Part shown: one piece after another, positions 55,878 through 63,641 of the stretch
Numbering within the stretch: position 1 is the stretch's first letter
Layout: each line of letters begins with the position of its first letter
DNA from: Zygnema circumcarinatum SAG 698-1b
Taxonomy: Eukaryota > Plantae > Zygnematophyceae
Length of the DNA stretch: 64,000 nucleotides
Direction of reading: 5' to 3'
Assembly (NCBI GenBank): GCA_037447605.1
Contig: CM074808.1
Span: forward strand, 310,001-374,000
The notes under the pieces: generated by a model
What the model was told of the DNA's origin: nothing
Seen by the model: only the letters and a program-made list of their open reading frames with translations
Database searches by the model: none
Made by a program: the position numbers and the translations under genes

Positions 55878-58800
55878 ATGGCAGCGGCCTCCATTGTCCC
55901 GCGCCTCAAAGCCCCCTTTTTCTCTCCTCCCTCCCTCTCTCCCTCTAATTTCCCGCGGTCCCTCGGATACGGTGGCAGCCGCATTGGTTCATTTCGAGGG
56001 AGACAACTGCGGCTCCATTTATTGGAATCTATGGGTGGCAGGAAGGGTGGGAGGCGGAGCTCTGCGCCATGGCGGGAGAGGAGGAGGGGGAGCCACGTGG
56101 CAGCTATGGAGGACGGGGCGGAGGGGGAAGGGGAGAAGGAGGACGAGCCGGAAGGACTGAGGATGGAGCTGGGGATGCTGCAGGCGGAGATGGAGGAGAC
56201 GCAGAGGAAAGGTGGGCGGGGAGAGAGAGAGTGAGAGAAAGAGAGAGAGAGAGAGAAAGTGAGAGAGAGAGAGAGCGGGAATGGGGGAAGAAGAGGAGAC
56301 GGAGGGAGAGAAATTGTGAGAGCTATAAGTAGAGGTAGAAGGGGAGAGGAGAGGGAGCAAAGGAGAGGTAGGAGCAGAGGGAGCGAGGGAGGAGAGGAGG
56401 GAGAGGGAGAGGTGGAGGTAGAGGGAGAGGGAGAGGGAGCGGGAGGTAGAAGGGAGGAGTAGAGGTTGGGCGAGGGGTCTATGGAGTGGGAGGAAGCGCG
56501 AGATGGGGAGTATCAATCCTTGAAGATCGATTATTCAATTTGACTGTGGAAATGAGAGGCTAAAAATTAAAGAATCCTTTTGTTTGACTAACTTGCACTT
56601 ATCTATTTATCTTTTTTTTAAATATTTATCTTACTTTTATTCGTTTAATATTTTCATGCTGGAGCGGTGATTCAACTGCATTCATTTGCAAAACCGACAC
56701 TCATTTTTGAACAGCTTGAATAGAACAATTTCTACATGCGCCCTGGAAAACTTGACTAGCGGAGAACTGTCCTCTGGAAAAAGCCAAAATCTTCAACGGC
56801 TTGTCTCCATTTTCATGCTTCAGTTCTTTTAATCATTAACTGACATGCGCAGCAACAAATGCCATTAATAACATGCAATTTAATCATTAATCGTTCAGCT
56901 AATTTCTTCAATATTTAATTGCAGCCAACAATGCGCGCGTCCGCTTCATCCGCCTTACAAATGCTGTGGAGCAGCTTCAAGCTTCAGCCATGGCTGCCAT
57001 AAAGGCGGGAGATGAAGCCTTAGCAAGGAGGCAGATAGAGGAGAAGGCTCGAATTATGGAAGCTCTCTCTCACGCTCAGAGCAGAGCAAACACTCTCGAA
57101 GCTCTTGCATCAAAACTGAATGAGGTTTTTCTCGCATCTTAATACCCACAAACGAAGACTGTCACTTTTTATTTTTTGCTAATAATCTCACCACTCAATC
57201 GCTTGGCTTTGTATCTCGGACAAGTCTTTTGGATGCTGTGAAGATTAACCAGTTATTAAAAGTATGTTAATTCAATAAACTGTATAGAATGAGGGTACAA
57301 TAGTTGATTTAGTCCATTAAATAAAGTGGAGATACCTATTCAAGTGAAACCGTGTGGGGTGTGCGTACATTTGCAGGCAATTTCTAGAAAAGAAACCTTG
57401 CTTATTTCCGCCCTTGCCTCATCGAAAGCTTCAGCTTCAAAAGGCCCATCGGAAGTGCGAGCAGCCCCCTCGAATTTGGGTTTAAGTTTGAATGAAATTG
57501 AAGAAAGTGAAAGAGAAAAGTCCCTCAGAATTGCTTCGGATGAGCAGCTGAAGGAGCGGTTTTTGAATATGGAAAGAGCAGACTTAGAAAGACTGTTAAA
57601 GCTAACTACGGAAATTTTCACAGAAGGAGGGGTGCAGGCAGAGGAACAAACATCAAAAGAAGATTCGATGCAAAGTTATTTAAATGCAGTGGAAGAACAG
57701 ATTGCTCAAGTAGAGGGGAAATATGCTCGCTTGTTAAAGTTAGGATCGGAGGGAGACATTTCTGCAGCGGAATTAAAGGTTCGGATTACAACAGCGAGAG
57801 AGATGCTGGTGCAACTTTATCAAATGCGGGACAGGTGAGTGGGAGCATTCCGAGTCTTCTGTAAAATGTTTCATAGGAGCTAGTTGTGTAGTTTCAATCG
57901 AGATTGCAATCTTATTCATTCATTAGTTACTTTGTGGAGGGAGGGCAGAATTTCTGCGAGGGAAGGGGCTCGCGATGGCGATTCTGCGGAGGAGAGCAGG
58001 AGAGACGGTGAAGGAGGAGAGGAGGAGGTGGGAGAGGAGAGTCCTGAAGAGAGCCCACTGCGGGAGGGAGGCACCCTCCCAATGAAGCCGGCAGTGCTTT
58101 CCGCGGTGGAGCAGTGGAGGGAGGGGTGGGGATCACTTTTTTCTCTCTCTCTCTCTCTCTCTCTCTCTCTCTCTCTCTCTCTCTCTCTCTCTCTCTCTCT
58201 CTCTCTCTCTCTCTCTCTCTCTCTCTCTCTCTCTCTCTCTCTCTCTCTCTCTCTCTCTCTCTCTCTCTCTCTCTCTCTCTCTCTCTCTCTCTCTCTCTCT
58301 CTCTCTCTCTCTCTCTCTCTCTCTCTCTCTCTCTCTCTCTCTCTCTCTCTCTCTCTCTCTCTCTCTCTCTCTCTCTCTCTCTCTCTCTTCTCTCTCTCTC
58401 TCTCTCTCTCTCTCTCTCTCTCTCTCTCTCTCTCTCTCTCTCCTCTCTCTCTCTCTCTCTCTCTCTCTCTCTCTCTCTCTCTCTCTCTCTCTCTCTCTCT
58501 CTCTCTCTCTCTCTCTCTCTTCTCTCTCTCTCTCTCTCTCTCTCTCTCTCTTCTCTCTCTCTCCCTCCTCTCTCTCTCTCTCTCCCCCCTCCCTCCCTCC
58601 TCTGCCCACTCTCTGTTCCTGTCGCCGCCTCTCGCCCTCTTCCTAACTCCTTCCTTTCTTGTTTCTCCCTCATTTTTCTCCCCTCCCGTCTTCCCACTCT
58701 CTCCCTCTCCCTCTCCCTCTCCCTCTCCCTCTCCCTCTCCCTCTCCCTCTCCCTCTCCCCCTGCAGGAACGTGGTGGGAGCCGCCGCCTCTCTGCAGCGA

Positions 58801-61800: not shown

Positions 61801-63641
61801 GTTGCTTCAGTTATTCGTTCCCTTTTTCCTTCCCCTCCTTTCTTTTCTCTCTCTCTCTTGCTCTCTCTCTCTTTTACTCCCCCCTCTCTCTCTTTCCCCC
61901 CTCTTTCCCTCTCTCTCTTCCCCTCCACTCTCCTCTCGCTCCCTCTCCCCCCTCTCTCTATCCCTCCCTCTTTCTCTCCCCCCTCTCTCCCTCTCTCTCT
62001 TCCCCACCTCTCTCCTCTCCTTCTCTCTCCCCCCTCTCTCTATCCCTCCCTCTTTCTCTCGCCCCTCTCTCTCCCTCCTCTCCCTCTCCCTCCACCCTCC
62101 CCTCGTAGCCAAGTCTCTCCCTCCTTTTCCTCCCTCTATGTACCGCCCCCAGGTTTGCAGCAGCGCGTGTTGGGCCTCTCGGAGGAGGCCGCCCTCTCTG
62201 TGAGGGCGGAGGGGGGAGGAGCGCTGTGCCGGAAACTGCTCAATAGGAGGAATGCGGGGGCTGACGTCAGCCCTAAAGATCTGCGGGGGCTGGCGGGGAT
62301 GTGCGGCCGCTTGGGAATCACACACGTGCGTATCATTGAAAAAAAAAAAATCCGAGCTGTTTTGAGTTTTTTTTTTTTTGTTTCTTTTTAGTGGGTTCTA
62401 ATTTGGGATCTAGTTTGGATTCTCTTTTTTCTTTTTTTCGATTAATGGAGGTTTACTGCTCTGTTTTTTTTTAGATTTTGGGATTTGTTTATTGGGGTGT
62501 TTTCAACTAGATGAGGAGTTTTGAAGCGGGAGAAAGAAGGAGCACGGACTTGATCTTTGAATAGTTATGCTTACGAGTGAGGGGGAGAAGCTTTCTTTTT
62601 CTTATTTTTCCTAACTGTATCGCTCCATTGTATATGCTGAAGCAGGTGGCGGGAGTAGACGTGAGAGATCGTCTCTTCCTTCTTCGGAGGGCCCTTCAAG
62701 CAGCACTCGACTCTCCCACCTTCACTCAAAGTGAGTCCTATTCAATGCTTGACCACAATTTCAACCTATTAGGCGAGAAAAGAAACAAACTTTCCGGATT
62801 CCCATTCTTGTTCACACACCCTCTCCATTCAACCCTTTCTTCTCCTTCTTCTTTCTACTTTCTCTTTCTCCTTTCTCCTTTTTCTTCTCTGCAGGCTCCC
62901 CCGCTGAAGCAGCCTTCGAGGGAGAACAAATGGTAGCAATTCTCCAACGAGCCTTTAACCTTCCTCCCAACGAGGTAGAAGTGGTCCATGTGGTAGTGGT
63001 AGGGAGTGCTGCCTCCTCCTCTCTCCTGCAAGCGAGAGCCTCTCTCCAGAGAGGGCAGAGAGAGGAGGCAATGGAAGATATGGGGAGGCTCGGACTCGCT
63101 CTCGGACTCCTTCCAAAGAGGCCCGAACCGGTTCAAGGTGTGAACACCTCCCAAAGTCCACAAAACGATAGGCTCACTTTTCATGCATGCATGAACCATG
63201 GGAGAAAAAAAAGAAGAGAGAGAGAGGAGAGAGAGAAGGAGAGAGAGTTGGGAGAGAGTTGGGAGTTTGTTGGGGTCGCTAGGCTTTCTAGGGTTTCTTT
63301 TTTTTGAGGTTTTTAGCTGTTTGGGGGAATTCGGAGATTTGGGGGCTCTTAGATTTTTGGAGTTTTTTCAGATTTTAGGCTCGTTTTTTTGCCTTTTGGG
63401 TCTTTCGGGGTTTGTTAGAGGGTGGGGTTCATGACTCATGGGTCGTTTTCGGATGGTGGGGGGTTCAGATGTGACGTCACGTGTGGGATCGGAGGAGGAG
63501 GCGGCGGAGCTCTATGGTTTGTATGTGAGCGGATTCGGAAGATGGGGGGAGGGAGAGGCGAGTCTGCAGCAAATTCGGTACCAAGAAATGGAGGGAGAGA
63601 TTCTGGAACGGGTCAGGATATATCTCGGTGTGGAAGGCTGA
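55878..63641 (+). CDS. plastid-targeted protein: PspA/VIPP1-like coiled coil fused to a divergent TIC110-like stromal domain, 15 exons
   Basis: Approximate exons: 55878-56211, 56925-57124, 57377-57834, 58767-58914, 59119-59229, 59551-59644, 60032-60101, 60441-60572, 60712-60852, 61024-61367, 61478-61652, 62153-62325, 62646-62730, 62895-63138, 63469-63641. Junctions are GT-AG and phase-compatible. Motifs are given in the findings. Confidence 0.8.
58142..58560. repeat. (CT)n microsatellite of about 420 bp, intronic
   Basis: Directly visible. Confidence 0.95.
59682..59985. repeat. TATCG-rich degenerate repeat patch, possibly a small inserted element
   Basis: Many (TATCG)n runs with some reverse copies (CGATA). 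Composition differs from neighbouring introns. Confidence 0.5.

Follow-up and report, generated by a model that had tools for sequence, protein, structure and literature searches.

TIC110 (PF16940; At1g06950 and CmTic110 are representatives) lies outside the 1-MDa Tic20 complex, and its role, whether as a channel, as an import scaffold or otherwise, has long been disputed (PMC3823011). Without its pair of transmembrane helices (TM1/TM2), it is a soluble, elongated and dimeric HEAT-like chaperone scaffold, and its reported partners are Hsp93, Hsp90C, Hsp60 and Tic40 (PMC3823011). The PspA/IM30/VIPP1 proteins (PF04012) belong to the ESCRT-III superfamily; in VIPP1 polymers the hairpins are stacked, helix alpha5 is swapped over the hairpin tip and helix alpha0 binds the membrane (PMC11919738). 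Here we describe a gene of the zygnematophyte Zygnema circumcarinatum SAG 698-1b that is related to the first of these systems and probably also to the second. It lies in a stretch of 64,000 nucleotides (contig CM074808.1, positions 310,001 to 374,000 of the forward strand; hereafter the window, in which all coordinates are counted), as a spliced open reading frame (ORF) on the + strand that runs from an ATG at 55878 to a TGA at 63639-63641.

The locus is one real gene. Judged from profile comparisons, the C-terminal ~630 amino acids (aa) of its product are a distant relative of TIC110 with an all-alpha, HEAT-like domain, while the hairpin that precedes them probably derives from a PspA/VIPP1-type protein. 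The family to which it belongs resembles TIC110 in its predicted plastid targeting, in a length of ~1000 aa, in the same repeat unit and in a HEAT-like region that runs colinear with TIC110 over its final ~240-400 residues, as far as the C-terminus. It differs in the absence of TM1/TM2, in a solenoid of ~630 instead of ~850 aa (a stromal domain ~220 aa shorter than that of TIC110), in its intron positions and in an extra N-terminal region of ~330 aa, made of the hairpin and linkers. With PspA/IM30/VIPP1 it shares a helical hairpin of equal length with a similar tip motif, equivalent to VIPP1 ~32-130; however, this hairpin has no alpha0, alpha4/alpha5 are undetected, and it is joined to a 630-aa solenoid. 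The protein is therefore not TIC110 by definition, because the transmembrane pair is missing and the Pfam cut-off is not reached, nor a PspA/VIPP1 member, because the hairpin alone is present. Other TIC110-like repeat proteins exist, since ARMH5 (PF22915) scores on canonical TIC110, and no Pfam match to ARMH5 was obtained on any family member. The gene is an undescribed, conserved paralogue of a normally single-copy, essential gene; in the literature searched, which covered part of the journals, we found no description of such an architecture or of such genes, and a search on the gene identifiers of the homologues returned no mention.

A conserved family in Zygnematophyceae

When exon 14 was searched against 1.84 billion representatives, two matches were obtained, P0001 (994 aa) and P0002 (1039 aa). 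The latter is the Spirogloea muscicola protein SM000077S21589, for which there is a second copy, P0003, and a search with P0001 led to Mesotaenium endlicherianum ME000007S09812 (P0004, 1251 aa, E=3e-90). P0001 itself is encoded on intronless contigs from three sequencing runs (SRR8128902/06/07) and is colinear across the window exons with 35-70% identity. The hairpin, the linker and the C-terminal region are found in one chain and in the same order in all four homologues, and those with a name are all Zygnematophyceae, the algae nearest to land plants. Whole-protein tests were run on these four database sequences, and the window exons were handled singly or as separate alignment rows.

Two invariant motifs characterise the family, KLLDKRNRG (P0001 799-810, exon 12), which is slightly altered in the window copy, and the family-specific RFLxMERxxLER (P0001 210-224, exon 3). 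No counterpart of either was detected in TIC110 or VIPP1, and they are candidate binding sites. No further homologues were found, which is weakly shown given that the exon search missed even P0004; a metagenome scan for further relatives gave no result, nor did a word-based search with the C-terminal profile, which also missed the known members P0002-P0004. The two Spirogloea copies are near-identical and located on different scaffolds (s77 and s75).

A TIC110-type C-terminal region

TIC110 sequences for comparison were fetched from metagenomes with a short degenerate DNA pattern based on TIC110 motifs and were confirmed by Pfam, the long ones scoring 828-921 bits on PF16940. Profile-profile alignment (HHalign) of the family with TIC110 gave P=90.5% and E=1.4e-6 over 237 columns at 19% identity, in a register that places P0001 from ~720 to its C-terminus colinear with residues 759-994 of a moss-like TIC110 (L042), and with a larger alignment the match grew to 562-993 against TIC110 591-994. 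The score of 58 compares with 22 +/- 3.5 (maximum 32) for a block-shuffled null of 40 profiles and with 17-20 for reversed-profile controls. The initial annotation had assigned TIC110 landmarks along these exons: the homology stands, but some landmarks were placed in the wrong register, given that exons 11-12 align best to the third TIC110 large repeat (L042 ~759-850) and not to the second, and the likeness between RRLEVGE and the TIC110 RLETGE is not conserved in the homologues.

Within the solenoid, large repeat 1 (P0001 368-483) aligns with the last TIC110 repeat (HHalign P=89-95%) and with the family's own repeat 3 (P=67.5%, E=5e-5), and we read three large repeats here against four in TIC110. 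The short motif L-x-x-L-x-x-x-L-G, which is of low specificity, occurs exactly at four places in P0002/P0003, at one in P0004 and at none in P0001. The AlphaFold model of the C-terminal part is all-alpha (predicted local confidence, pLDDT, 79.7; predicted template-modelling score, pTM, 0.66). Pfam searches of single exons for Tic110 and sequence searches of the PDB yielded nothing useful. Among the sequences fetched from plant metagenome contigs, L008, L015 and L036 are short TIC110-like fragments between stops (34 codons), possibly pieces of TIC110 pseudogenes.

The TM1/TM2 pair is absent from the window exons and from all of P0001-P0004, and an acidic linker occupies the equivalent place. 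Maximum hydropathy over the window exons, taken singly, is 1.41, and the best 19-residue value in P0001 is 1.34 versus 1.93-1.96 in the TIC110 controls, whose transmembrane regions peak at 1.93-1.96 and 1.42-1.62. P0004 has an uncharged stretch at 796-814 with a hydropathy of 1.79, in mid-solenoid and not common to the other members. Judged from these profiles the protein is probably soluble. It is also predicted to be plastid-targeted: the N-terminus encoded by exon 1 is rich in Ser, Pro and Arg with its first acidic residue at position 50 (a matter of composition only), and P0002-P0004 and window exon 1 have zero or one acidic residue among the first 40. The profile match, the absence of the transmembrane pair and an mRNA-like contig of a relative that spans the junction between the two parts agree with the initial annotation, in which the product was a soluble or peripheral TIC110 paralogue with a fused hairpin and no N-terminal membrane pair.

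Gene structure

The gene was reconstructed by reading window 54500-64000. All introns are GT..AG, their phases are compatible and no exon contains an in-frame stop, in keeping with the single continuous spliced ORF recognised at the outset, and both parts are likewise joined in P0001-P0004. That earlier model, however, had 15 exons totalling 960 codons with a direct 57834/58767 junction, and it missed an additional symmetric phase-2/2 exon at 57949-58125, inside its intron 3, which was revealed by P0001 (BLAST E=2e-4 against P0001 356-378). The likely junctions are instead 57834/57949 and 58125/58767, so that the gene comprises 16 exons and encodes 1019 aa. The direct splice would be in frame, but it would remove the first helix of the TIC110-type region together with the skipped exon, and we rejected it as the main form. 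The features are as follows, the additional exon being numbered 3b.

55878..56211 (+): exon 1; ATG, predicted transit peptide of ~77 aa, short acidic spacer and beginning of hairpin helix 1
56925..57124 (+): exon 2; core of the hairpin, including the VIPP1/PspA-like tip motif, 69% identity to P0001
57377..57834 (+): exon 3; hairpin end, linker, conserved helix (core RFLxMER) and second small hairpin
57949..58125 (+): exon 3b; acidic linker and first TIC110-type helix, phase 2/2
58142..58584 (no strand): (TC)n tract of 224 copies, within the intron after exon 3b
58767..58914 (+): exon 4; TIC110-type large repeat 1, P0001 380-430
59119..59229 (+): exon 5; large repeat 1, P0001 431-464
59551..59644 (+): exon 6; large repeat 1 and helix pairs, P0001 465-495
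60031..60101 (+): exon 7; short and divergent, placed by phase arithmetic
60441..60572 (+): exon 8; helix pairs, 70% identity to P0001 518-562
60713..60853 (+): exon 9; beginning of large repeat 2
61024..61367 (+): exon 10; large repeat 2, P0001 609-699, E=7e-13
61478..61653 (+): exon 11; helix pairs, aligned to TIC110 (L042) ~755-810
62153..62325 (+): exon 12; aligned to TIC110 (L042) ~810-860
62646..62730 (+): exon 13; aligned to TIC110 (L042) ~860-885
62895..63137 (+): exon 14; beginning of large repeat 3, TIC110 ~885-960, used as the query by which P0001 and P0002 were obtained
63469..63641 (+): exon 15; completion of repeat 3, counterpart of the C-terminal helix of TIC110 (L042 ~965-994), stop codon

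Exon 1 matches P0001 21-78 (tblastn E=2e-10), and exon 3b has an alternative acceptor 9 nt upstream that is likewise in frame. The sequence match of exon 7 is not significant, and its length fits the 24-residue gap at P0001 496-519. Exon 9 is the best window ORF for the TIC110 hidden Markov model (HMM), though weakly so (E=0.56).

Two observations concern the introns. The phase-0 intron at 60853, the end of exon 9, lies four residues past an RQRN motif, as does the last intron of land-plant TIC110; the RQRN-linked intron of the window gene sits in a different repeat than that of TIC110, and the likeness may reflect coincidence or past shuffling of repeats. In intron 6, an AT-richer element of ~320 bp (window 59680-60000) with many short GTATC/CGTAT repeats, noted by eye, is possibly a small transposon insertion of the miniature inverted-repeat (MITE) kind.

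A possible scaffold without a membrane anchor

We lean, with somewhat more confidence than doubt, towards a nuclear-encoded, plastid-targeted, soluble TIC110 paralogue that would act as a stromal chaperone scaffold and in which the hairpin would stand in place of the membrane anchor. Its most likely origin is a duplicated TIC110 that lost TM1/TM2 together with roughly one large repeat and was fused to a coiled-coil hairpin. The product would be imported into the plastid and its transit peptide then removed; the ~630-aa solenoid would act like the stromal domain of TIC110, as an elongated and probably dimeric protein-binding scaffold whose partners may be the stromal chaperones Hsp93/ClpC, Hsp90C, Cpn60 or Tic40 that are bound by canonical TIC110, a precursor-binding protein of the inner envelope. 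The hairpin, on a flexible acidic tether of ~200 aa, would dock the scaffold onto a partner protein. In this reading the protein would serve as a chaperone adaptor on a tether, located within the stroma or at the surface of a membrane, and would be neither a channel nor a self-polymerising remodeller.

Several points weigh against such a scaffold. The transit peptide is judged by composition, and the N-terminus of P0001 is atypical, since four of its first 40 residues are acidic. The family is only ~19% identical to TIC110, and the best Pfam Tic110 score is 12.3 bits (E=0.058) versus a gathering cut-off of 27, so that binding surfaces may not be conserved. Large repeat 1 matches TIC110 repeats 4 and 3 best and repeat 1 weakly (P=4%), while one BLAST comparison instead favours TIC110 repeat 1 (E=0.002); different TIC110 repeats may therefore be its source, and the transit-peptide-binding region that follows TM2 may or may not be retained. 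Foldseek returned only generic solenoids with TM-scores up to 0.2, which carries no information, since the crystal structure available for TIC110 was published as a poly-Ala model at 4.2 A (PMC3823011). Finally, of the 14 introns of a grass TIC110, 12 were resolved, and a comparison by eye in the aligned register showed no match between any of them and an intron of the window gene; with no clearly common positions, intron sharing was rejected as evidence of origin.

The hairpin and its possible origins

In the model of P0001 the N-terminal region forms a long hairpin with helices at 57-105 and 109-163, followed by a mostly disordered linker with three short helices. For comparison, 111 cyanobacterial VIPP1-type sequences were fetched with a short degenerate DNA pattern based on VIPP1 motifs; only motif, length (243-292 aa) and cyanobacterial origin served to identify them. 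Two of the loci, L078 (Phormidium) and L100 (Oscillatoria), carry two tandem VIPP1/PspA-type genes ~1.3 kb apart.

The Pfam PspA_IM30 profile matches P0002 over profile positions 32-131 with 26.7 bits (E=5e-6), the best score in the family and below the PF04012 gathering cut-off of 33.9 bits, and window exon 2 with 14.6 bits (E=0.025). The VIPP1 HMM ranks exon 2 first among 1540 window ORFs, at 13.3 bits. An NCBIfam search gave nothing useful. Taken together with the TIC110 match by HHalign, separate profile checks of the two parts thus both gave signals above chance. As for the PspA/IM30-like segment claimed in the initial annotation, the hairpin is detectable above chance, while the likeness spans the hairpin only and stays below the Pfam cut-off.

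That a C-terminal TIC110 relative is joined to an unrelated, generic coiled coil, in a protein repurposed away from import or chaperone scaffolding, is conceivable but doubtful. The tip motif is matched by designed helical repeat proteins at least as well as by Vipp1, scores similar to these come from SMC and further coiled-coil families, and the invariant motifs of the family (KLLDKRNRG and the RFLxMER core) are its own. Against this, HHalign of the hairpin with VIPP1 scores 27-29, versus 15 +/- 3 (maximum 24) for a heptad-shuffled null, and the Pfam PspA register is identical in P0002, in P0004 (a weak match) and in window exon 2. A PspA/VIPP1-type protein is the probable source of the hairpin.

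If the hairpin were a working VIPP1/ESCRT-III-type module, of the kind that forms rings, rods or carpets and remodels membranes, it could co-assemble with VIPP1 polymers or cap them and bring a TIC110-type scaffold to places where thylakoids or the envelope are being remodelled, which we consider rather unlikely. The long hairpin of the model and the Pfam match of P0002 are in its favour, as are an ungapped alignment of P0001 57-126 with VIPP1 32-101 by the family profile and a search of 1578 cyanobacterial ORFs with that profile, in which the top 67 matches are all VIPP1. The tip is moreover the best-conserved part, and it is over the tip that alpha5 binds in VIPP1 polymers (PMC11919738). However, that background set contained few other long coiled coils, the Pfam scores are below cut-off, HHalign assigns a probability of only 11-17% and gives two registers that compete, and P0001 and P0004 barely score on the VIPP1 HMM. 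Alpha0 is missing, since the matches start at profile position 31-34 and the preceding acidic coil has a pLDDT <50, and alpha4/alpha5 were not detected by HHalign. To the eye, the conserved helix spanning P0001 207-226 looks like alpha5; HHalign gave P=0.2% and did not align it there, and we rejected it as such. Without alpha0 and with alpha4/alpha5 undetected, self-polymerisation and direct remodelling are unlikely, and the hairpin probably does not act as a polymerising ESCRT-III module. A link to membrane remodelling of the ESCRT-III kind, as had been suggested for this gene, is speculative and weakly supported, by a match of ~70-100 hairpin residues that is below cut-off, with alpha0 absent and alpha5 undetected. 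That a zygnematophyte adaptor couples a TIC110-type scaffold to VIPP1/ESCRT-III assemblies, and so delivers chaperones or precursors to sites of thylakoid biogenesis and repair, is likewise an unlikely proposition.

A word-based search with the N-terminal profile for a stand-alone land-plant protein found nothing, a weak result given that the method missed known members. Such a stand-alone plastid coiled-coil protein, At3g09050-like (At3g06868-like in the initial annotation), may have a similar hairpin behind its transit peptide and acidic spacer and would lack the TIC110-type region. One listing gives At3g09050 among unknown phosphoproteins of the chloroplast, with an acidic peptide (PMC4189921).

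Remaining alternatives

It is very improbable that the protein is the sole, strongly diverged TIC110 of these algae, with no extra paralogue. TIC110 is nearly always single-copy (PMC3823011), and no canonical zygnematophyte TIC110 was retrieved, in searches that could not have found an algal copy. However, moss-like and grass-like TIC110 are 51-56% identical to each other, whereas the family is ~19% identical to both. TIC110 is an essential protein that retains TM1/TM2 across the range from red algae to angiosperms (PMC3823011), and a sole copy that has lost its anchors is implausible.

A reading in which two neighbouring genes, or sequences wrongly joined during assembly at the long (TC)n tract, were taken for a single gene is scarcely credible, and we rejected it. 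In its favour, the exon 3 donor forms a stop codon when left unspliced, at which exons 1-3 could terminate, a 440-bp tract lies in the intron 3' of exon 3b, and no transcript from the window's own species was seen. However, a relative's intronless contigs from three runs cross the junction and encode the two parts within a single ORF, and the gene models of two other genera likewise show a single chain. Only 114 nt from exon 3, and upstream of the tract, exon 3b contains the first TIC110-type helix; a comparable tract occurs in an intron of the RPL23 gene next to it.

Other features of the window

The neighbouring RPL23/uL14 ribosomal protein gene (window 51530-54280, +) carries a 171-copy (TC)n tract at 51751-52092 in its first intron, so that the tract at 58142-58584 is an ordinary intron feature in the window. 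Divergent from RPL23 is an F-box/LRR-type gene (window 49100-50850, -) with a large exon. Both genes lie upstream of the one described here, in a window that is of plant or algal and not of human origin. A tandem array at window 34741-35162 consists of ~27 copies of a 15-16-bp unit with AAACCCTAAA, a plant telomere-like core. In window 24494-33000 and 38730-41171, ORF fragments resemble, by eye, two beta-hexosaminidase-like copies and a GnT-II (MGAT2)-like glycosyltransferase gene.

Significance of an anchor-free TIC110 paralogue

Returning to the favoured soluble scaffold, the anchor-free solenoid has been kept in Spirogloea, in Mesotaenium and in two further species, which suggests that the solenoid has a function without a membrane anchor. 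With this family, the scaffold model of TIC110 can be put to a direct comparative test. If it is true that the hairpin engages VIPP1, plastid protein import or chaperoning would be linked to membrane repair.

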